Assembly: GCA_020891255.1 (NCBI GenBank)
Contig: BQFW01000008.1
Coordinates: 620,001 to 684,000 of the forward strand
Length of the DNA stretch: 64,000 bases
From: Entomortierella parvispora E1425
Lineage: Eukaryota; Fungi; Mortierellomycota
Direction: 5' to 3'
Position numbers and translations under genes: made by a program. Positions 1 to 11,794 of the stretch are shown here, piece after piece (position 1 is the first letter of the stretch; each line of letters starts with the position of its first letter). Below the pieces are notes generated by a model. It was not told the origin of the DNA and did no database searches. It worked only from the letters and a program-made list of their open reading frames with translations.

Positions 1-893
1 ACAATGCATCCTCCGAAGTGGTCTCTGCCACTACAGCGGGACCGTTGAGCGTCTCTCCATTACAGGAAGCGCTCCAGCAGCATCAATCATGTGGAGATTT
101 GATTCAACAAACGGAACCCAGCGGTGAAGAGGGCTTGCCTCAAGCACAGTCCCCAACAGCGGCGGTCGTACCCCGTGCAAGACCTTTGCATGGGCGTCAG
201 CGCATGTTGTCTCGAGTCCATCGTCATGGACTGATGATGCCAGTCATGGATCGTATGACCCCTGTTCCCAAAGCGCTCTTGCCTGCCTACTGGGAACTGG
301 CCGATACTTTTGTCATGCCTTGGTCCGACACCCAGTTGAATCTGCCGGATGAGATTGTTCAAGAGATCCGACGACAGTTCGAGACGTCAGAATGTTATCT
401 CGAGATGTTTGAGCCTGTGGTTCGAGAGATCCAAGAGCTGGTCTATGTGAATGTCTGGCCCCGTTTCGTGGTCTTTTTGCAGAAGCAGCCCCAGGGATTC
501 CGAGGTCGAATGAAGTTGGCTTGGAAGAGGTTTACAGATCGTGTCTGGGTCGGAAATCACTTTGCAGGAAATCACCACGATGGCAATGGATACAATGGAG
601 AGGGTGGAGTCTACCGAGGACCGACGACGCCACGTCCTCATGAGCTCTCACGAACGTCCTCTGGACAATTCCCAGAGACGATTTATCAGGACGAGGAGGA
701 CATTGCACGAGCACAACAGCAGCAGGCAGAGGGATACATTCAGAATCAGTATAGTTATCTCGGAGGACTTGGAGCAGTTCGACCAAGGGCTGGCGAGGCA
801 AAGGAGGTTAGCGAAGAGGAGTTGGGTCAGTTTGGCGTGATGCAGGAGCTAGATCTCACGGCTCTTCAGCGGATCGTCGTTGACCCTCAATAA
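1..893 (+). CDS. RGS (regulator of G-protein signalling) domain protein, 3' part only (5' end outside window)
   Basis: Frame is open from the window edge to TAA at 891-893. WELADTFVMPWSDTQLNLPDEI...MFEPVVREIQELVYVNVWPRF matches the C-terminal half of the RGS fold (I..F......elNi.......i....F......i..l...n.wprF). Confidence 0.75.
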   Translation, partial: NASSEVVSATTAGPLSVSPLQEALQQHQSCGDLIQQTEPSGEEGLPQAQSPTAAVVPRARPLHGRQRMLSRVHRHGLMMPVMDRMTPVPKALLPAYWELADTFVMPWSDTQLNLPDEIVQEIRRQFETSECYLEMFEPVVREIQELVYVNVWPRFVVFLQKQPQGFRGRMKLAWKRFTDRVWVGNHFAGNHHDGNGYNGEGGVYRGPTTPRPHELSRTSSGQFPETIYQDEEDIARAQQQQAEGYIQNQYSYLGGLGAVRPRAGEAKEVSEEELGQFGVMQELDLTALQRIVVDPQ

Positions 894-1744
894 GTACCTT
901 TTGTTTTCTCTCCATTATTTGCATTCTCACTCCAACTTCTCTCCCCCACTTTTTTTTTATATCTCAGAGTTCTTTTTTTCAGTTCAACTTATCCACTTTC
1001 TCCCTTATCTTCTCCCACCACCATTCATTCATACAACAGAAAAGGGGAAAGCTGGATTGTGTCAATAGTCATGTAAACTAGCTATACCATAGTCACGATA
1101 TTAAACAAAAGGCAGCAGCAGCCGTGAAAACAGGAACATCCATGCTCATTGCCCATTAGTTGCAGCCGCTGTCTTTTCGACCTTTTCCCAAGGTGCTCTC
1201 GAACATTGAGCTGTTCCCACCATCGTGCTACATTGATGATGTATCTGTTGACGATGTACCTGCATCTGTTGTTGAGCTGGATGTGGACATTTGTTTACTC
1301 ATCACTCCTCTCTTGCCACTCTGTCGAGGGTGAGGGCGAGGGTACGGGTACATAGAGAGTCCAATCCACGCCAACAAACAATCACACAAAAAATCGTCTC
1401 TTGCCTCACCTCACCATCTCGACTCTTTCAACCCTCAAAGATCGAGTTTTTTTTTTTTTTTTTTCTTCCGCGGGAGGGAGAACCGCCCTGGGGTCTTTGA
1501 ATGAAACGACCGAGTTTTTTTATATATTTATTTTCCTTTTCAAAAAAGAATGGGGAAGGAAAGGGTTTGTTGACAGTGCCAAAAAGATGAAAGGTTTTGA
1601 AGAGACGAGGCTTGGGAATCATGCCCCCCTTGGCGCGCGGTATGAAAACATGGATCGAGAAGAAACATTACTTTATCCATCATAAAAACAAACAATCAAA
1701 AAAGCATCATTAAAAACACGAACAAAACAAAACTAGTCTTTTTT

Positions 1745-4700
1745 TTAAATCTCTCGATTTCGGACAAGCAGGTTCCAACAGGTATCCAGGTCCTGAGGCC
1801 CAATGGAGAGATCGCAGTCCAAAAAAGTCAAAAACTCATTCTCCATCCGATCCAAATCGTGCACCTGAAGGACCATGGGCGCAGCGTGAGAGGTCGTTGT
1901 GGATGCAGCAGTAGAAGGAGCGGATGAAGAGGCGGTAAAAGCCATGGAGTTCTTGATCGGTGTAGCTTGGATGGGCAAAGACCGGGCTGGAAAAGTTTCT
2001 TCTGGGGTGCTTGTTGTTCTCTTTGCTCTTTCCTCGGAGCTATTAGCAAATATACCACAGCTCAGGGTCGCACAAGAGCCTGCAGCGGCGGCAGAGGATG
2101 ACGCCGACCCCAAAGCAGCTGCAGTGGGCAAAGGAGCAAACTGCAGCACTGCATTTTGAGTTTGGGCACCTGGGGTGGTCATGCTGGGGGACAAGGGCGT
2201 AGTCGCTGCTGTAGAAGGCACTGTAGGAGGCATCGAGGGCGAAAGCGGAGGAGAAGGTGGAGGAGGCGACACAGTGTCTGCCATTGTCGTGGTCGAGGAT
2301 GGCCGCGGTGGTGGACTGAAGAAGGACCCCAGACTCAACAACCGGATCCATTCATAGTTTGAAAAGATCAACTCTGCCCTGGACCGAGCCTCCCAGATCT
2401 TTTCCTCAAGAGCTACTCGATTTTGTTGACGAAGCTCTTCAGGACTCTCCATTGATACTTCCTCTTTGATAGGAAGCATTTCTCCGCAGTCGTCTGCATC
2501 TCTTCCTCCAAGATATTCACCATTGGGACCGCAGATTTCAGGCTGAAGGTCCATTCGAGGAGAAGAAGACGGAGAGGCAGAAGCAGAGGAGAGGGATTGC
2601 TGTTCCTGAAGAAGAGTCTCAATCTCTACACTGCAACGATATTTGGCCGCAATGATGTACGCGACCAAGAAGAGTCGGTGAGAACAGCCGGGTTCACCTT
2701 TTGCCTCGGGATATTTCTATGAGAGTGGGCGAAAGAGCTTGTTAGTCGAGAATAAAAAAAAATGGACTAAAAATATTCTCAAATAAGCTTGAGTTTGGTA
2801 ACTTACAGCCTTCAGTCGGTCCACATAGATCAGGGCCAGTGTCAAGGTGAGGTTCTGGAACGGTACCTTGACCAAAGGGGAAAACCTCGGTGTGACCGAA
2901 GGCGATGGGATGGGGGACGAAATGGTGGACCTTTTGGCGGCCAGACTGTTGTTCCTACCCTCATTTCGAAAGGTGGGAGAGGTTGGGCTGGGCAACAGCA
3001 TGGAACCACGGCGATCGGTCGAAGACAGGGACCAAAGGTCTGGAACATTTCCAATTTGTTGTTGTGGTTGATGGTGCAAGTGGCGTCGGGTCTGATAATC
3101 GTGGTATTCAGACGTCTGACGATGCCTCTTGGCTGCGAGTGAGGACTCTGTCCTAAAAGGTCCCGGTCCAGCAGACATTGGAGACGGCAAAGAATGAGAG
3201 TGATCCTGGAAGGATCGACTGTTTCTCCTCGGTGTGACTGGACCAATAGTGCGACTCCGAGGTGAAGTCATTCCTGCATGGCCGTCGCTATTACTGATAT
3301 TAGGGGTTTGGTAGCTATAAGCGGTAGAGGTCGATGCGGAGGAATTGTTATAGGTATTGGTGTTGGTGTGGGCGTGAGTGTGGTTCGCGTTCTGGGCAGC
3401 AGCATGTTGTTGCTGCAGTTGTTGTTGTTGTTGTCGCTGTGCATGCAGGACCGTCAGTCGACGATGGATGACTGTCGCCTGATTGTGCAAAGCCGAGTTG
3501 TCCGCGGTCAAAGTCAAGATATGGCGGATATAATTAGCCAGTAATAAGAGTGGATTCGACTGCACTGGGTTGGCGGAGGATGATGATGCGGTCCGCGGTG
3601 GCTGCAATTGGTCTTCTGGACCGGGGCGATTGCTATTCTCCGTGTGAACATCCCGATGCTGTAGTTGTTGTTGCTGCAGTAACTGCACCTGTGCGCCTCT
3701 TTCCTGTTGGTCTGAACTCAATCCTGCTTCATGATCGGCCAACTCCTCCGCGGTAACTTTCGAGGTCGAAGGGGAGGCAGGGGGGTGTGATGCTGTATCT
3801 CCTGCTTGTGTTACCGCCTTTGTCGGCCCTGAGGCTGTTGTCAAGTCGGCTGGGGCAGAATCCTGAGCAGGTGCAGAACTGGATTCCCATCGGGAGACGG
3901 TGAGGTGGGTTGAGAATGCTATGAATAGAAAAAGGTGGGTGGCCGCAGTCAGGATAAAAAGAACAAGAGAAAAAGAAAGTTAGTGACATGTATGGATCGG
4001 CGCTCCAGAGCTTTGGCTCATCTTTCAAAAATATTGAATTTTTTTTTCTTTTCAAAATCGACCGAGGAAACAAGTGGAGTGGCGCAAGGCATTGGTCTTG
4101 TCCCAACAAAAGAGCAGAGAGAGAACAAAGAGCACCATGGGTGGATGAGGGGCCAAAGTACAAAAAGGACATGCTGTGTCACCCCAAGCACCAAAAAAAT
4201 CGCACAGCCCACCTTGAAATTACAATGTTTGTTTTCTCTTGACGCATGCATCCCAGCCACGCTGCACATGAGGGATATAGAACATGGGGGACACACCCTG
4301 TCCAAACAATTCGATGTGGGATTATATTCACGTATTTGGAAAAGTACAGATGCTTCGAAGAAAAAGACAACTCGCCCCTTGAAGACACAAGGCACAACAA
4401 AGTAGATTAAGCCTAGAACAAACACGCATGGGCTAAGCCGGTCTCGTACCCTCTCTTCTTCCCTGCTCGAGCGTCTTCTGCGTCGCGCTGCTACTCCCGG
4501 ATAAACCCACGCCCCTTGCAATGGTTCCAGTGATGAGTGAGCAAAAGAAAGATGGGCGACAAAAAGAATTTCGATGAATCGAACGAACCGAGGAAGAAAG
4601 ACACAACAGGGAGAGATGTGGGTCGCGGGCGAGTCTTTCATATCCCGCGGAGCATGGCTCAGCTTTTTTTTTTGAAATTCGATTTTTTTTTTTTTTACCT

Positions 4701-5380
4701 ATCGTCCGATGCTCAACTGTGCCTGCATCCTCGGCCTGGAGTCGCTTTAAACTCTGGCGGATCCCAAGATGTTGCCCCAGGTACGCTCGTTTGCACGCTA
4801 CCGAAACAGGCATACCGTACAATGTCGGTGGAGGTGGAGGTGGAGGTGGATAGTCAAAGTATAGCGGACCATTGTGAGAAGGCTCGTGATTATAGTAGTG
4901 TTGATTATGAAAGCGCGTTTCTGCGGATGTTGTCGAGCGGACTGCTGAGGCGAACGGTGAAGGGTTGTCTGACCAAAGGTCGGGGGATGTTTGAATAGGG
5001 GAACGAGATGGGGCTGCAGGCGCCGACGTGTCAATGGTCATTGCTGGCTGTCTTGGAGCTTCCAACGCCGCCTTAATCCGATCAAAGAGCGAGGGCAAAC
5101 GCCTCTCACTGGAGCTCCGCGGACCTGCATAGGGCGAAGGCCTGCGAGACGACGAAGAGGCGTGGTGTGTTGTCTTTGCCGCACTGGTCCTTGGAGGGGA
5201 GCGCATCCTTCTTTTAGGTGATTTAGAGAATGACAAAGGAGGAGGAGACCTTGCCAAAGAAGTGATTGACGGACGGCGACTGTGATGCTGTTGCTGCTGC
5301 TGCTGCTGCTGATGACGGAGTAGGGGGCTGGTGGGGAGGTGGTCTACTGGATCGATGGTGACAAGACTGTAGAGCTTCAT
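1745..5380 (-). CDS. Pho80/Pcl-family cyclin-like protein, about 882 aa, mostly low-complexity; exons 5380-4816, 3918-2807, 2716-1745
   Basis: Splicing 2807/2716 (GTAAGT..ATAG) yields TLALIYVDRLKAKYPEAKGEPGCSHRLFLVAYIIAAKY, a Pcl-type cyclin box. Downstream IFSNYEWIRLL and DLDRMENEFLTFLDCDL match later cyclin helices. Exon 1 joins in frame via a phase-1 GTATGC donor and TAG acceptor (897-nt intron); exon 1 is less certain than the core. Confidence 0.8.
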
Positions 5381-8029
5381 ATATAGTCGAGATGAGGGTG
5401 GCTTTTAAAGTCGAGAGGAATGAAGGAGAGGGGTGAAAGGGCGGAGAGACTGTGAAAGGGTCGAAAGCGAATCGAACTGATCAAGTTCGGGATGAGGCAG
5501 TGTGGTTCTGTTGATCAAAGGGTCAATTGGGAGACAGGAGAGAGTGGAGGTGTGGATGCAAGGGAGGGGCAGGCAAGTGAGTGTGAGTATGAGTGTGTAG
5601 GAGGATCGACGCGGGAGGGGACAAGGTCGGCAAGCTGGGCCAAAACAAAAGGCGAGAGAATTGAGCTTGGAGGATAGCAGTAGGAACAAACGATTCTTGG
5701 AAAGGGAAAGGGAAAGGGGGCAGTTGCTTCTATTTATTGCCCTCGCTGGTCTCTTTGCTCGGCGGGTCCCCGGCTCTGTCGTCTTAGTTTGGGAATGGCA
5801 GGGTCGTGAGGAAGAAAGGGATCTCCGCGTTGATTGCGGTGATTGCAGGGACCAGGTGTCCGCGAAATTTTTCGGCTCTGACACACGGAAAGAAAAAATA
5901 AATGCTCCATCCACCTCTTTCCATGGTGACGGGGAGAAGACGCCATCGAAACAGCTCTTTGTTTTCTTAGGCAACCAAACAAAAGGAAGAACAGATTGCA
6001 TTATTATTGCTTCTTTGCCTTGCTTTGCTTCGCTTTGCTTGTGAGTGAAGAGAACATAACGGGGGACCGTTCTTTCAAAGGGAGCTGGGATCGATTTTCG
6101 AGGGCCCGTTCTTTCCTGCCCGTCCTTGACAAAATAAAAAAAAATCGAGAGAACAAACTCACGCACAACAAAACAGGCTCGCTCGGTAGTACAACCTGTC
6201 CAGGGCGCGGGGATACCATAGCTGCAGTGCAACGCCAATTTTTGGATCTTCCGCGGACAATAATCACTCCCAGGCTTTGCTTCCGTGCGTGTGCCAACCT
6301 GTGCCAACCTGTGCATGTGGACGAGGCCTTTCCTGCACCAACCAGTCGTCTCTGCGCAAGAATAAAACAAAACAGTTTGCCTTTTGCAATCCTGCAGTGA
6401 AAATAAATATATACCTTTCTGTGCAGAACAACAACGAAGGCAAGTGCGGCTATTGTCATGGGGGGTTCTATGTTTGGCATGGCTATCAAAAGGTCCCACG
6501 TTTTTTTTCTTGGGGGTTTCTGTTGTACCTGCACTGCCGTCATTACGTCAATCCTACAGACGCGTACGACCTTGACCCAAAGAGATATAGTCGAGAGTAC
6601 CTCAAGTACGCAGGGTCAGGCTGGTGTACTTGCCGTAGTCATCTCAATGGTAAAGGGTCTTCCTGTTGCTCTTTGTTCCGAGGAGAGCAGGTGTAGATTC
6701 TATAGATTCGGGCTATTTCACTGTGGCGAAGGCGTCGACCTTGTTGCCGTTGCGACTTCGCTTCTCTATCTTTAGTACATCGCACAGTGAACGATCTGTT
6801 GTTCCATTCATTTACAATAATAGTGCGATAGCCAACGGTCATGAGTCTAGCGTTTGTTGAAGTCATTTTAGCTGCAGTGCTGAACGGTTTCCACATTGTT
6901 TGCGCAATCCTCCAGACACAACCCATCCTCGAAGAGTGTTCGCTTTCCAAGTCCTGCTGGTGAGAGCAGGATCATGATCACCCAAGCATGCTGAGCCCAG
7001 AACAAGGATTCTACACCGTGAGAATCACTTCAAGCTCAAAGGTCCTTCAACAGTTATTCTCTTCTATAACTGCCTTCTGAGCGCATTGATACTGGGGCTT
7101 TGAGATTGTACCCATTCCAAACAGCCGTACTCGCTCTATTCCGACCTAATGAAGCCATTGCAGTTAATGCTCAGGCTCTCTCGTTCGAGGCAGCGATGAG
7201 TTGACTCGTACTACTCCAGTCTGATGGGATCCCACGATTGATACTCCAGGCACGAATGATTTCGTGTCGCGTTCGTGTCAAACAAATATCGCGTTTATAA
7301 GATGAGGGTGAGGAGGCAAGGAGATCAAGCACCTGGTTCGCTTCCCAAACACAATTCCCACGACCACCATGCAGGGTCAGAGCCGAATGAATGAAAGTTT
7401 CTTCGTTTGTCTAACCCACACTTTCGATTTCATTTGCAATTGCCCTCCCACTTGATCCCTACTACGGGTTCCCCATCATTACGAATCAACGGATGTGCCT
7501 GCAGATTGTGATTGCATCGAGGATTTCATTCATGGTGACAAGAGTCGTCTTTCACGAGCTACTATCCCTCAATTGCACACGCTGGCCCTGCTCATCGATT
7601 GCTCACAACACCAACTTTCTCCATGACGGCCATGTGGCTCACCGACCCTTGTCCATAGTTTGACGCTTCATTTCCACTCCACGGTTTTGCTCTCCACCTT
7701 TTTTCCTTCGTTCCGCATTCGCACTCGTAATCCGCTTCCGTCTGTGTTCCTTTGTATCTCTTCTCTGACCACACCTCTGCGCTCGTTCCTCTCCTCTCTC
7801 CTCTCTCCTCTTCTCTTTTCATTTCTGACGATAAACATTGGCCGTGTGCTGCGAATTCCTGCCTTCCCCTAGTCGATTCTTTTTCCTCACGTTCACACCG
7901 GAAGACAAAAAGCTCTTTATGGTCTTATTTTTTTTTTTTTTTTTTTTTTTGCCCTCTTTGAATCTCTGTCCTCATTCCACTCTCCTTCCTCTCCTCATTC
8001 AGTCTCCACAAAAAAAAAAGGGTTCCGCC

Positions 8030-9536
8030 ATGACCTCCATTTCACCTTCACCAGTGCCGTCGGCCCCTCATGTGAGCCTTGAGAGGTCCTCGACCTCAAC
8101 TTCTGTGGGTTCGTCTCGAGCGAGCGTAGTCTCGCCCATCCGCAGGGCCAATGTGACCAGCCCCACCAGCCCCACAGCACGGCCCTCGCTCCCAGGCGCG
8201 CCCAGTAAACGGTTCTCGACCGTCCAGTCCAAGGTCGGCTCACTGGAGGCCATCCATTACAAGCCCAAGCCGTCCGAGAAGAAGATCCAGTCCTTCAAGC
8301 AGGATTTCTCCCATATCAAGTCCAAGGTCGATGCCAAGTTGGTCCTCCCTCCCTCCGAGCCAGGCGTGGCCAAGAGCACGGCCGGCTCTTTTTCTGTCGC
8401 AACTGCTGCGGGCAGCCGTGGAGGTAGTGTAAAGAGACCCACGGTTGTGACAACAACATCAACAACAACAACAGCAAGGACAGCTTCACGCCAGCCCCTA
8501 TCGCCTCCTCCATCACGGACCTCTTCTGCGGTCAGAACGGCCACTCCTGCTGTGATCAGTACCTCGGCTGCTACAGCAACAACCACAACCACAACAGCCA
8601 CCGCAACATCCCCTCGCTCCCCTCTTCATTCTCGAAGGAGCTCCAGTGTCTCCACAACCACGAGCCCACCCTTATCGCCGTCGAGTCCTAACAGTGGCAG
8701 TGCCAACAGCCGTCGGCTCTCCAAACATATTATCCCCACTCAAAAAGCTCAATACGATCATGTCAAATCCAAGGTCGGATCCTTTGACAATGTGGCCTAT
8801 AAGGAGGCGGGACGTGGACGACCCAGCAGCAGGGCCTCGTCCAGTGGCGGCAACGGCGGGGCCTTTTCGCCCAACAATGGTCGATCTCGATCACCGAGTG
8901 GGGCGCGCTCTTCCAATTCTTCCAATGGGGGATCAACGACAGCCTCCACCACGTCAACGGCCCAGAGACGCTTGTCCTCTGGGGGCAGTGGCTTCAAGAT
9001 CCCGCCCTCCAAGAAAGTGGATTACTCCAAAGTCCGGTCCAAGGTTGGAAGTTTGGAGTTTATCAATCATACGCCTCAAGGTGGTAACCTCCGGGTCTTT
9101 AGTGAAAAACTGAACTTCAGGGAAACCGCACAGGTAAAAGACAGCGAGAGTAAAACGAAAGGAAATGAAGGGGCAATGATAGAAAGTGCAGGGGTGGATT
9201 CCTCAATTGTAACCACTTTTTTTTTCTTTTTCTTTCGTCATGTTAAATATAATCCAGTCCAAGATTGCAAAGGAGATTAATATCACCCAGTTCTACCAGA
9301 ACGAAGACCAGTCCTTCGATACTTCGATTCAAGAGGAGCATGAAGGGGAGGCAGTGCAAGGACAGGATAACGGAGAAGCAGTAGCTGAACATCACACACA
9401 GGAGCAGGATGAAAGTATCATTTATGGATCCAACGCCGGCGCAGACGAATTTGAGCCTCCCAAGAACATTCTCACAGTCTTGGCCGAGGTCACTGAGTCA
9501 GTCGGCGAGATTGGTTTGGAGGAGGCTCATTCGTAA
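8030..9536 (+). CDS. Tau/MAP2-like microtubule-binding repeat protein, about 460 aa; exons 8030-9133, 9258-9536
   Basis: Motifs VQSKVGSLEAIHYKP, YDHVKSKVGSFDNV and KVDYSKVRSKVGSLEFINHTPQGGNLRVFSEKLNFRETAQ|SKI align by eye with Tau/MAP2 tubulin-binding repeats (PF00418). The phase-0 GT-AG intron 9134-9257 restores the QSKI motif. Confidence 0.8.
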
Positions 9537-9737
9537 ATATCCATACCACGTCAAGGAACGCTTGTTGATTTGGAAAATAAGACAGATAGGGAGAGTCGAG
9601 AGGCTCTATATTGCATGAAGTTGAACAAGAAGTACGACGACAGCGATACTTGTCATATCACATATCATCAATAAAAATGCCCCTCTTGTGAAGGCTGAGG
9701 GGTTTCTAATATCTCTATTTATTTTTTGAAAGATTGT

Positions 9738-11794
9738 TCACTTCTTCAGCGCCTTTTCTTTTGCAGCAATGTCAACTCCTTCCTCGACCTCTTGCGAGGG
9801 TCTCTTCTTCTTGGAAGCCTGCTGCTCTGCATCTTCCATTTTCGAGACTGGTTGTCCTGCAGGGACGGCTCCTCCAATGGCCTCAACCACGCCTTCCTCA
9901 GCGGTTTCCAGTCTCTGGTTTCGCTTTTGGAGCGCGGCCTCCACCGCGATTTGAGCCTCATGCTTTTCACCGGTGCTCTCTGGTTCAATACCAAAGACTT
10001 CAGAAAACAAAGTAGCCTTAGCCTCAAACGTGCCGTCCTGGATCGATTCTCTGACCTTTGAGAAGAACAGACTGTACTGATGCATGTTGTGGCTAGAGGG
10101 AAAGAGATGCAGCATGGCAACGTCAGACAATAGCGCACGCAGAGATGTTGTCATGATATTACGATGATAAACAGACTAGCTTACCCCATAAGCAAAACTG
10201 TGGCGAGCATCTCATGTGTCTTCAGGAGATGGTTGATATAGGCCCTCGTATGCCGGTTACCCTTGCAGGCATAGCACTCGCAGCCTTCCATGATGGGCTT
10301 GAATTGGTCCGCATGCTCTTCGTCCCACAGATTAATCCAGCGGTTGGTCACAACAGACTTGTTCGTGGTGGGTATTGATGGCGCAGCAGCGGCGGCCTCA
10401 ACACCATATTCATAAAGAGACGCCTTTCCATCCTCTGTCAATTGGTAAGGGTATGACGTGTCGAAAAGATCCACGCCCATTGCCACAGCCTTCAGCACAT
10501 CCTCTGGAGTTGGGAAAAAAAAAAAAAAAGAAAGTAGGACTGAGTTAATGATCATGTCTCTTTCTCGATCCAGCTAAAAGACCTACAGGAGAGTCCAAGG
10601 TCCTTACCTGGTGTGCGGACGCCGTACACCATCTTTGGTTTTTCAGATGGCAGGTGGGTCAAGGAGGTTTGAACATGAGCCAAAATCTCACCCGACCGCT
10701 TCTCGTGCTCCTTTGAAAGAGTGGCCCACAAGTCGTTCGTGTCAATGATGAATCCTTGAACCTGGTCCCGTCTTGCAGTCTCCTGTGCACTCCGAATACG
10801 CTCTTCCTTCATATGTGCTCCCTGTACATGAGCGAATACAGTAATGTCGGTCCAAGGCTGAGAGACAAAAGCGTTGCCTTCTTCCTGATCCTCGTTGGCA
10901 GCTGGGGTCATTTCCGTGTCTCCATCAACAGCATTCTTGGCGTCTCTGGCTTTTTGCTTCTTCTCCCTCTTTGTCCGCTTTTCTTGCTCTTTTTTCCGAT
11001 CCTCCGCCATACCATCGCGTCCTTGTCTCTCTTCCAGAACTTGGTCCAGCCACTTAAGACTGCGATCCACACTCTTTCTCACTCTCTTCTGGGAAGGAAC
11101 CTTCTTGTGAGGAGTTGGGTTCCCTGCCGTCTGGGTCGTTTCCAAGATTGAATCTGTCAAGGCTGCAACAATGTCGGGGCGGTAATGGCGGACGATCTTC
11201 AAGTAATCTTCCAAGGTCAACTGGCGAATTCCCTTGGGCGTAGAGAGAACGACGTGATAGTCAGTGTTGGAGGCACGCTTTGAGAAGGGTTCCAGTGGTG
11301 CCGAGTCATGGAAATCACAGAGGAGAATCAGATCCTGAAGATGAAGATAATCCGCAACACTCATCAGCTTCTGGCTTTCAGGTGCAAATGGGTTGGTCCA
11401 CTTTGAAAAGGACTGGGGCTGATCCGTTTGACTAATTGATCCCACAGAGGACGCGACGAAACAACCCAGAAAAAAAAAAGAACTATGATCAGTGCTCGTT
11501 CTTTGATTCCCTAAGCCAGTATCACGGCTATGTCATCTTCCTATTTGCTTCTGTTTTCCTGGTTCCTTACAGGATCTGCTCCATGGCCACGTTCACACCG
11601 CCAAAGGTCTGCTGCCTCAAGTTGTCGGGGGTGAGGTGGGGGACCGAGCCCTTGATGGAGTACATGAAGCAACCAGGAGTGTCGATCTGTCGTTTTTCCT
11701 GATGAGCGGAGGCGATGGCGAGGGTGCCGGTTCGCGCATGGAGGTGCGACTTTGCAGCGCTATTATCCTGTAACTTGAATGAGAACGACGACAT
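9738..11794 (-). CDS. QTRT2: Queuine tRNA-ribosyltransferase accessory subunit; exons 11794-11571, 11431-10608, 10503-10185, 10092-9738
   Basis: TPGCFMYSIKGSVPHLTPD N-terminal motif, GVDLFDTSYPY, and Zn site CECYAC...HTRAYINHLL...HN. All four exons join in frame with GT-AG introns. Confidence 0.9.

Follow-up and report, generated by a model that had tools for sequence, protein, structure and literature searches.

A Tau/MAP2/MAP4-type repeat protein in the fungus Entomortierella parvispora and its probable descent

The two-exon gene EMPS_05859 of the soil fungus Entomortierella parvispora E1425 (Mortierellomycota) encodes a genuine member of the Tau/MAP2/MAP4 repeat family (PF00418). It occupies positions 8030–9536 (+) of the window, a 64,000-nucleotide stretch of contig BQFW01000008.1 (positions 620,001 to 684,000 of the forward strand, GenBank assembly GCA_020891255.1), and its spliced product of 460 amino acids is letter for letter the database protein EMPS_05859 (P0001), labeled 'hypothetical protein' by NCBI and 'Microtubule-associated protein' by UniRef. 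A preliminary description of the window, made from the sequence alone, had proposed a Tau-family protein in an early-diverging fungus, and that proposal holds. The reading that best accounts for all of our results together, and one we consider fairly likely, is that EMPS_05859 is a fungal Tau-family member that binds microtubules much as tau does, under phosphorylation control, and that came to this fungus by vertical descent.

Scanned against PF00418, the check that the preliminary description had proposed for the protein, exon 1 matched in four stretches at 101.5 bits against a cut-off of 27 (expectation value, E, 2.1e-29). In a phmmer search of all PDB sequences the matches were tau chains (best E 5.8e-17), among them 6cvn and 6cvj, models of tau bound to microtubules; the single non-tau match was at chance level (E 4.9). 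Short pieces also matched the profile when scanned alone: residues 318–358 at 53.9 bits (E 1.6e-14), residues 232–272 at 32.3 bits and residues 52–93 at 27.9 bits (E 2e-6), with a weak match at residues 86–125 (15 bits, E 0.024), where the core is a degenerate SKVD. The KVGS cores lie at residues 68–71, 248–251 and 338–341, in the three segments singled out in the preliminary description, whose peptide strings were correct and whose nucleotide ranges were right within 1–3 bases; degenerate cores lie at residues 97–100 (SKVD) and 369–372 (SKIA). HMMER paired residues 328–367 with human tau R3 and the beginning of R4, 22 of the 40 positions being identical; this is the alignment that had been claimed for the last segment. 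BLASTP identity over this fourth repeat was 48% with MAP2 and 52% with a MAP4-like protein from a starfish. The fourth repeat is also the only one that retains a PGGG-type turn (P-Q-G-G), which repeats 1 and 3 have lost.

One argument of the preliminary description carries less weight than was thought. The appearance of SKI after removal of the intron had been taken as a sign that the motif is real, and this is weak, since the segment is degenerate and residues 352–395, which hold the post-intron SKIAKEINI, gave no PF00418 match when scanned alone. HMMER and BLAST place this pseudo-repeat at the SKIGS..NI start of tau R4 and MAP2 R4.

Conservation is concentrated in the repeats themselves. Across 16 Mortierellaceae proteins and that of Bifiguratus, the invariant columns fall almost entirely in the repeat cores (QSKVGS, SKV..N and D.S.V.SK..S..H.P.GG..F.EKL), and Q66–S71 of repeat 1 is invariant in 17 fungal sequences. 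The residues of tau repeats that face tubulin are known from cryo-electron microscopy of tau on microtubules, and the concentration of invariant columns in the repeat cores points to selection on those residues.

EMPS_05859 is predicted to be intrinsically disordered, as tau is. Serine, threonine and proline make up 37% of the whole protein and a fraction of 0.53 of residues 102–240, a region spanning the first linker that carries a net charge of +15. The N-terminus (residues 1–60) is basic and rich in the same three residues (net +5), and repeats and linkers together (residues 1–385) carry about +37, a tau-like charge layout in the repeat region. AlphaFold2, run on a 17-sequence alignment, gave a mean predicted local distance difference test score (pLDDT) of 44.7 with two weak helices at residues 363–374 and 439–451 and no confident fold, and the pLDDT of the ESM Atlas model was 0.41. 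In the ESM Atlas, the only matches were large animal clusters; there was no structural match, which is to be expected of a disordered protein.

Distribution and origin of the fungal family

The queries were exon 1, the Bifiguratus protein, a Spizellomyces protein and a fungal profile, the last run against 1.84 billion cluster representatives; clusters that matched were then named. Exon 1 retrieved orthologues from about 38 Mortierellaceae species, a Bifiguratus adelaidae homologue and, ranking after these, fish tau and mammalian MAP2. The fungal profile matched 1482 representatives at E <0.001, of which 150 are listed, many of them without names. Among the matches listed are Mucorales (Helicostylum, Syncephalastrum, Pilobolus, Benjaminiella and Rhizopus microsporus), Glomeromycota (Racocetra and Cetraspora) and chytrids (two species each of Spizellomyces and Geranomyces, together with Powellomyces, Thoreauomyces, Phlyctochytrium, Rhizophlyctis rosea, Clydaea and Irineochytrium). 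The PF00418 family thus occurs in Chytridiomycota, where at least 10 chytrids of at least 7 genera carry it, and in all three lineages of Mucoromycota. The proteins of Mucorales, Glomeromycota and chytrids mostly have 4–9 contiguous canonical repeats with PGGG, and the Mortierellaceae form is the most derived fungal version.

The searches also turned up diversity within these groups. In Rhizophlyctis rosea (P0222; P0215/P0351) and the Spizellomycetales (P0229, P0236, P0212, P0324–P0326), chytrids have at least two types of PF00418 paralogue: the first, short and closely resembling the animal proteins, has four repeats and ends in ..KLNFKETAAPRIDAS, and the second has 5–7 repeats and the conserved ending PLGGHV.IV.EP..Y.TK..LA.AA. 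A 663-residue protein of Irineochytrium annulatum (P0240) combines about 10 degenerate Tau-type repeats (AAPRVDARSDHKAGGGDVKIFNEK units) with a C-terminal region of about 300 residues that looks ankyrin-repeat-like by eye, an architecture not met among the animal proteins examined and one that could be a gene-model fusion. Among P0059, P0178, P0182, P0184, P0188, P0221, P0234 and P0274, whose named members are Glomeromycota (Racocetra, Cetraspora), several distinct 50%-identity clusters have in common the C-terminal motif PELT.AQ(K/Q).YD.SW(I/L), and the recurrence of this tail in several clusters suggests a paralogue expansion with a conserved tail of its own.

In the most likely history, the gene passed down vertically from an ancestor that fungi share with animals, was retained in chytrids and Mucoromycota and disappeared in Dikarya. 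The preliminary description had left deep origin and transfer side by side; the deep origin fits the distribution better, a split between fungi and animals is not rejected by the trees described below, and the transfer is now the less favored of the two. Vertical descent is favored because two deeply separated fungal phyla carry the family, and because a fungus-only motif, HIIPTQK, is common to Mortierellaceae, Bifiguratus and Glomeromycota. Its IIPTQ core was found in 34 of 38 Mortierellaceae proteins, in Bifiguratus and in Racocetra, and in none of 129 other fetched proteins (mostly animal, with three from Mucorales and some unnamed). Two deep fungal phyla have canonical repeats, with identity to human tau R3 reaching 55%, and on this ground the repeat probably arose before animals and fungi parted; a pre-animal origin fits the known trend for early-diverging fungi to retain 'animal-like' genes lost by Dikarya. 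An end-of-array motif, KL.F(K/R)E.A.P(K/R)(I/T)D, is common to a chytrid, Mucorales, echinoderms and vertebrates, which suggests that the ancestral protein already consisted of repeats plus a terminal pseudo-repeat.

From the last repeat and tail (45 rows, 56 columns), maximum likelihood recovered Mortierellaceae (support 98), vertebrates (96), Glomeromycota (98) and seven chytrids (100) as clades; at depth the tree was a polytomy, and support was confined to clades within groups. Mortierellaceae grouped with Glomeromycota and Bifiguratus (Shimodaira–Hasegawa-like approximate likelihood ratio test, 89), and no fungal group fell inside an animal clade with strong support in this tree. Once six long-branch rows had been removed, placing all fungi on one side of a branch improved slightly on the free tree, and the approximately unbiased (AU) test did not reject the arrangement (p-AU 0.53); the same held for Mucoromycota (p-AU 0.60). 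Nearest-neighbor scores taken repeat by repeat were uninformative, the repeat being too conserved and the group sizes unequal.

Three considerations weigh against vertical descent. With 56 columns and a deep polytomy, the tree cannot prove it. Among the 150 of 1482 representative matches listed there is no member from Dikarya, Zoopagomycota, Blastocladiomycota or unicellular holozoans; such absences mean 'not seen' rather than 'absent', because only a fraction of the representative matches is named. Finally, a true lack of the family in unicellular holozoans would make an ancient transfer more competitive.

Such a transfer, between the animal lineage and an early fungus, either ahead of the divergence of chytrids and Mucoromycota or repeatedly, would leave family and function as proposed here, and we consider it unlikely. 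It would account for named matches that lie only in animals, chytrids and Mucoromycota, with none seen from unicellular holozoans, Dikarya or Zoopagomycota, and for the strikingly animal-like repeats of Bifiguratus, Mucorales and the chytrid protein P0222; those of Mucorales score equally against invertebrate repeats and against other fungal ones. The absences, however, are weak evidence, drawn as they are from 150 listed of the 1482 representatives, and the family in the two fungal phyla has lineage-specific architectures and fungal introns. Nor is there supported nesting of any fungal group within an animal clade, the tree with fungi as one clade being slightly better than the free one, and the repeats of Mortierellaceae are those least like vertebrate repeats. 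A move into the fungal stem would in any case hardly be distinguishable from vertical descent.

Candidate function

By analogy with tau, EMPS_05859 probably binds microtubules and is regulated by phosphorylation at its KVGS motifs. In the 2018 work of Kellogg et al., the source of 6cvn and 6cvj, tau repeats were reportedly found to bind along the length of protofilaments by way of their KXGS region. Each fungal repeat would likewise lie longitudinally along a protofilament, anchored on tubulin by S-K-V-G-S and by the His and Pro-Gly-Gly that come after it, with the basic disordered linkers adding electrostatic affinity for the acidic tubulin surface. The length of these linkers would let three or four widely spaced anchors span several tubulin dimers, stabilizing or spacing microtubules. 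MARK/Par-1 phosphorylates KXGS, and fungi have Kin1-type relatives of MARK. Phosphorylation of S71, S251 and S341, the KVGS serines, by a kinase of this type would weaken binding, as would phosphorylation at the many S/T-P sites. The protein's acidic tail may recruit partners or loop back onto the basic region. The preliminary description had linked the gene to coenocytic hyphae; that link is not needed to explain it, because the chytrid carriers are not hyphal coenocytes of that kind.

Extended to the whole family, the proposal is that the ancestor of fungi and animals had lattice-binding proteins of the Tau/MAP2/MAP4 type, that these persist as functional, KXGS-regulated stabilizers in chytrids and Mucoromycota, and that they were lost towards Dikarya. 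We regard the case for and against this broader proposal as evenly balanced.

Binding by the Entomortierella protein has several features to contend with. Its repeats are dispersed rather than contiguous, set apart by linkers of about 130 and 67 residues, and a P.GG turn is kept by one repeat only. The acidic tail could also occupy the basic repeats by folding back onto them, and our full-text literature search found no experiment on microtubule binding by any fungal member.

It is correspondingly conceivable, if quite improbable, that in Mortierellaceae this Tau-repeat homologue no longer binds microtubules and serves as some other disordered scaffold, for instance in binding actin, membranes or RNA or in condensates. 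KVGS is kept in three of the five repeat-like units, the linkers that part the repeats are long and of low complexity, and the lineage has conserved motifs of its own (HIIPTQK, SKIAKEINI.QFYQ and EPPKNIL.VLEEVTE). Yet the most conserved columns across Mortierellaceae and Bifiguratus are the repeat cores, the residues that contact tubulin in tau, and a single tau-type repeat with its flanks is already able to bind microtubules.

Gene structure and neighborhood

The features of the gene are collected in Table 1. The intron, which the preliminary description had predicted at the same coordinates, has an identical position and phase (..AQ / SKIAKEIN..) in two other Mortierellaceae loci, one from an environmental relative (L001) and the other from Linnemannia elongata (L002), with a length of 278 nucleotides in the latter; the intron sequences are unrelated and stop-rich, and the flanks are conserved. 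No RNA run is listed for the gene, and a search over runs of any kind returned only DNA-like or untyped ones. We also compared positions 7800–9800 of the window with four untyped runs under the same species label (X4, X5, X9 and X10). A 1880-nucleotide contig of run X10 covers 7800–9130 and continues directly with 9255–9540, so that it omits exactly 124 bases, GT..AG, and with the cut moved by +3 reproduces the 9133/9258 junction. Contigs of X4 and X5, which share their sample with X10, and of X9 keep their own introns of 114–118 nucleotides at the same place.

The simplest reading of the intron-less contig is a spliced mRNA beside genomic or unspliced forms; the library type of X10 is not on record, which tells against treating the contig as direct proof of splicing, and the transcript is therefore something we infer. 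The relative represented by this contig has about 87% nucleotide identity to the window, and 32 of the 40 listed differences fall at third codon positions, which argues for a translated, constrained frame. The start codon at 8030 is supported because the N-terminus (MT.VS..P) is conserved in orthologues.

Animal-DNA contamination, misprediction of the gene and chance or convergent similarity are scarcely credible and we reject them: a protein so rich in Ser, Thr and Pro belongs to a kind that yields spurious matches, but the gene sits on a 3.3-Mb fungal contig beside a syntenic neighbor, is present in about 38 Mortierellaceae genomes and has a short, fungal-type intron at a conserved site, and the matches lie in conserved repeats that are not of low complexity and score one by one (E 1e-14 for one 41-residue piece).

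Table 1. Features of EMPS_05859 by position in the window
Feature	Positions	Strand	Remarks
Whole gene, ATG to stop	8030..9536	+	460 residues; P0001 / EMPS_05859
Probable 5' untranslated region, with T-run 7928-7952 and A-run 8010-8019	7800..8029	+	intron-less X10 contig reaches at least 7800
Exon 1, residues 1-368 (368 codons), ATG at 8030	8030..9133	+	
Repeat 1 (residues 61-93), core SKVGS, KPKPSE in place of PGGG	8210..8308	+	PF00418 27.9 bits
Degenerate repeat 2 (residues 94-108), core SKVD without GS	8309..8353	+	15 bits; conserved in Mortierellaceae
Linker 1 (residues 109-227), basic, Ser/Thr/Pro-rich, predicted disordered	8354..8710	+	pLDDT <50
Fungus-specific motif RRLSKHIIPTQK (residues 228-239), then repeat 3 (residues 241-260), core SKVGS	8711..8809	+	32.3 bits
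Linker 2 (residues 261-326), Ser/Gly/Arg-rich, basic	8810..9007	+	net +9, about 50% Ser/Thr/Pro
Repeat 4 (residues 327-363), most Tau-like, KVDYSKV-SKVGS-..INH.PQGGN..V.SEKLNF	9008..9118	+	53.9 bits
Degenerate pseudo-repeat RETAQ / SKIAKEINITQFYQ (residues 364-385), split by the intron	9119..9308	+	conserved in Mortierellaceae
Intron, 124 nucleotides, GT..AG, phase 0, between ..ETAQ and SKIAKE..	9134..9257	+	conserved site; skipped in X10 contig
Exon 2, residues 369-460 (92 codons), plus stop at 9534-9536	9258..9536	+	
Acidic C-terminal tail (residues 386-460), net -18	9309..9533	+	EPPKNIL.VL.EVTESV motif at 9453-9518 (residues 434-455)

Runs X4, X5, X9 and X10 differ from the window by about 12% in nucleotide sequence across the gene and also in the sequence of the intron; the species label probably spans several lineages of species rank, at least two. 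Assembly contigs break at the 25-nucleotide T-run and 10-nucleotide A-run that lie shortly before the ATG in the presumed 5' untranslated region. The upstream neighbor is a large multi-exon gene at 1748–5404 (-), with a counterpart at 299–3090 (-) of L002; its position and orientation are conserved between Entomortierella and Linnemannia elongata, whereas the downstream neighbors differ. Directly downstream in the window, minus-strand open reading frames at 9738–11445 (-) converge on the gene; they contain a Cys-x-Cys-x2-Cys..His stretch and look like one multi-exon gene.

Earlier reports and comparison with known systems

In reviews, the Tau/MAP2/MAP4 family figures as an invention of animals, and largely a neuronal one, and the preliminary description had likewise taken it to be generally described as metazoan, which made a fungal member seem new. 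The fungal family is in fact already catalogued, since UniProt and UniRef automatically name members 'Microtubule-associated protein'. A homologue from Rhizopus delemar with a 'distinct' architecture was reported in one sentence and one figure panel by Sündermann, Fernandez and Morgan (BMC Genomics 2016, PMC4815063). Beyond that mention, our full-text search of the literature returned no functional or dedicated evolutionary study of fungal or chytrid Tau-type proteins.

The present finding has its value as an overlooked lead and does not amount to a system of a new kind; the probable pre-animal age of the repeat is under-appreciated. Functional proteins of this type in the fungus–animal ancestor, if confirmed, would overturn the customary account of an 'animal-only' family. 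They would also make available transformable, non-neuronal, non-animal organisms for work on the reading of the microtubule lattice by tau-type repeats. Should the fungal proteins prove to bind microtubules, these organisms would be simple systems in which no other family members mask phenotypes, suited to asking what the minimal role of a tau-type repeat is, what KXGS phosphorylation does and why Dikarya can dispense with the family.

With vertebrate Tau (MAPT), MAP2 and MAP4, EMPS_05859 has in common the PF00418 repeat with its KXGS core, the 'EKL.F' inter-repeat and, in repeat 4, a His/Pro-Gly-Gly turn. Repeat 4 is about 48–55% identical to its vertebrate counterparts. Further common features are disorder (predicted for the fungal protein), flanks that are basic and rich in Ser, Thr and Pro, and a degenerate pseudo-repeat behind the final complete one. 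EMPS_05859 is orthologous to none of these vertebrate subfamilies, because it has no contiguous array, no acidic projection domain and no significant match to the LAKQGL tail. The vertebrate repeats form a contiguous C-terminal array, whereas those of EMPS_05859 are dispersed (2 + 1 + 1 + pseudo) over residues 61–108, 241–260 and 327–385. In place of an acidic N-terminal projection domain the fungal protein has a basic N-terminus, and the Pfam scan of exon 1 found neither MAP2_projctn nor an RII-binding domain. Vertebrate introns fall after PGGG, and the intron of EMPS_05859 precedes the SK core of the pseudo-repeat.

The tails differ as well, that of the fungal protein being strongly acidic (-18). 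We do not claim homology to the vertebrate ..L(A/S)TLA..V(S/T)A.LAKQGL tail, for which phmmer gave E 0.47 and hhalign of the tail alignments E 0.44. By eye and in end-to-end HMMER alignment, the Mortierellaceae tail EPPKNIL.VLEEVTESV.ELGL (9453–9518) is collinear with ..SPQL.TLA..VSASLAKQGL of tau and MAP2, a likeness that is not significant, and SIIYGS upstream of the tail motif echoes EIVYKS of tau.

Among invertebrate Tau/MAP2-like proteins, of which C. elegans PTL-1 and Drosophila tau are further examples, those of a starfish (MAP4-like, P0062), a mussel (P0063) and a nemertean (P0056) resemble EMPS_05859 in being short, with little beyond repeats and flanks. Identity over repeat 4 and the following pseudo-repeat is 40–52%. 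Unlike the fungal protein, animal members have contiguous repeats, keep PGGG and are without the HIIPTQK and EPPKNIL motifs.

In fungi, Saccharomyces cerevisiae Mhp1 ('MAP-homologous protein 1') is a microtubule-stabilizing protein that was first likened to MAP4 and that, to our knowledge, is without PF00418 repeats; among the matches listed in our searches there was none from Dikarya. The closer comparison is with the other fungal PF00418 proteins, namely the Rhizopus delemar MAP, Bifiguratus P0038, Mucorales P0057, P0058 and P0073, Glomeromycota P0059 and P0178, and chytrid P0229, P0236, P0212, P0215 and P0222. Most repeats of the Bifiguratus, Mucorales, Glomeromycota and chytrid proteins retain PGGG, and the proteins of Bifiguratus and Glomeromycota resemble EMPS_05859 in carrying the HIIPTQK motif ahead of a repeat.

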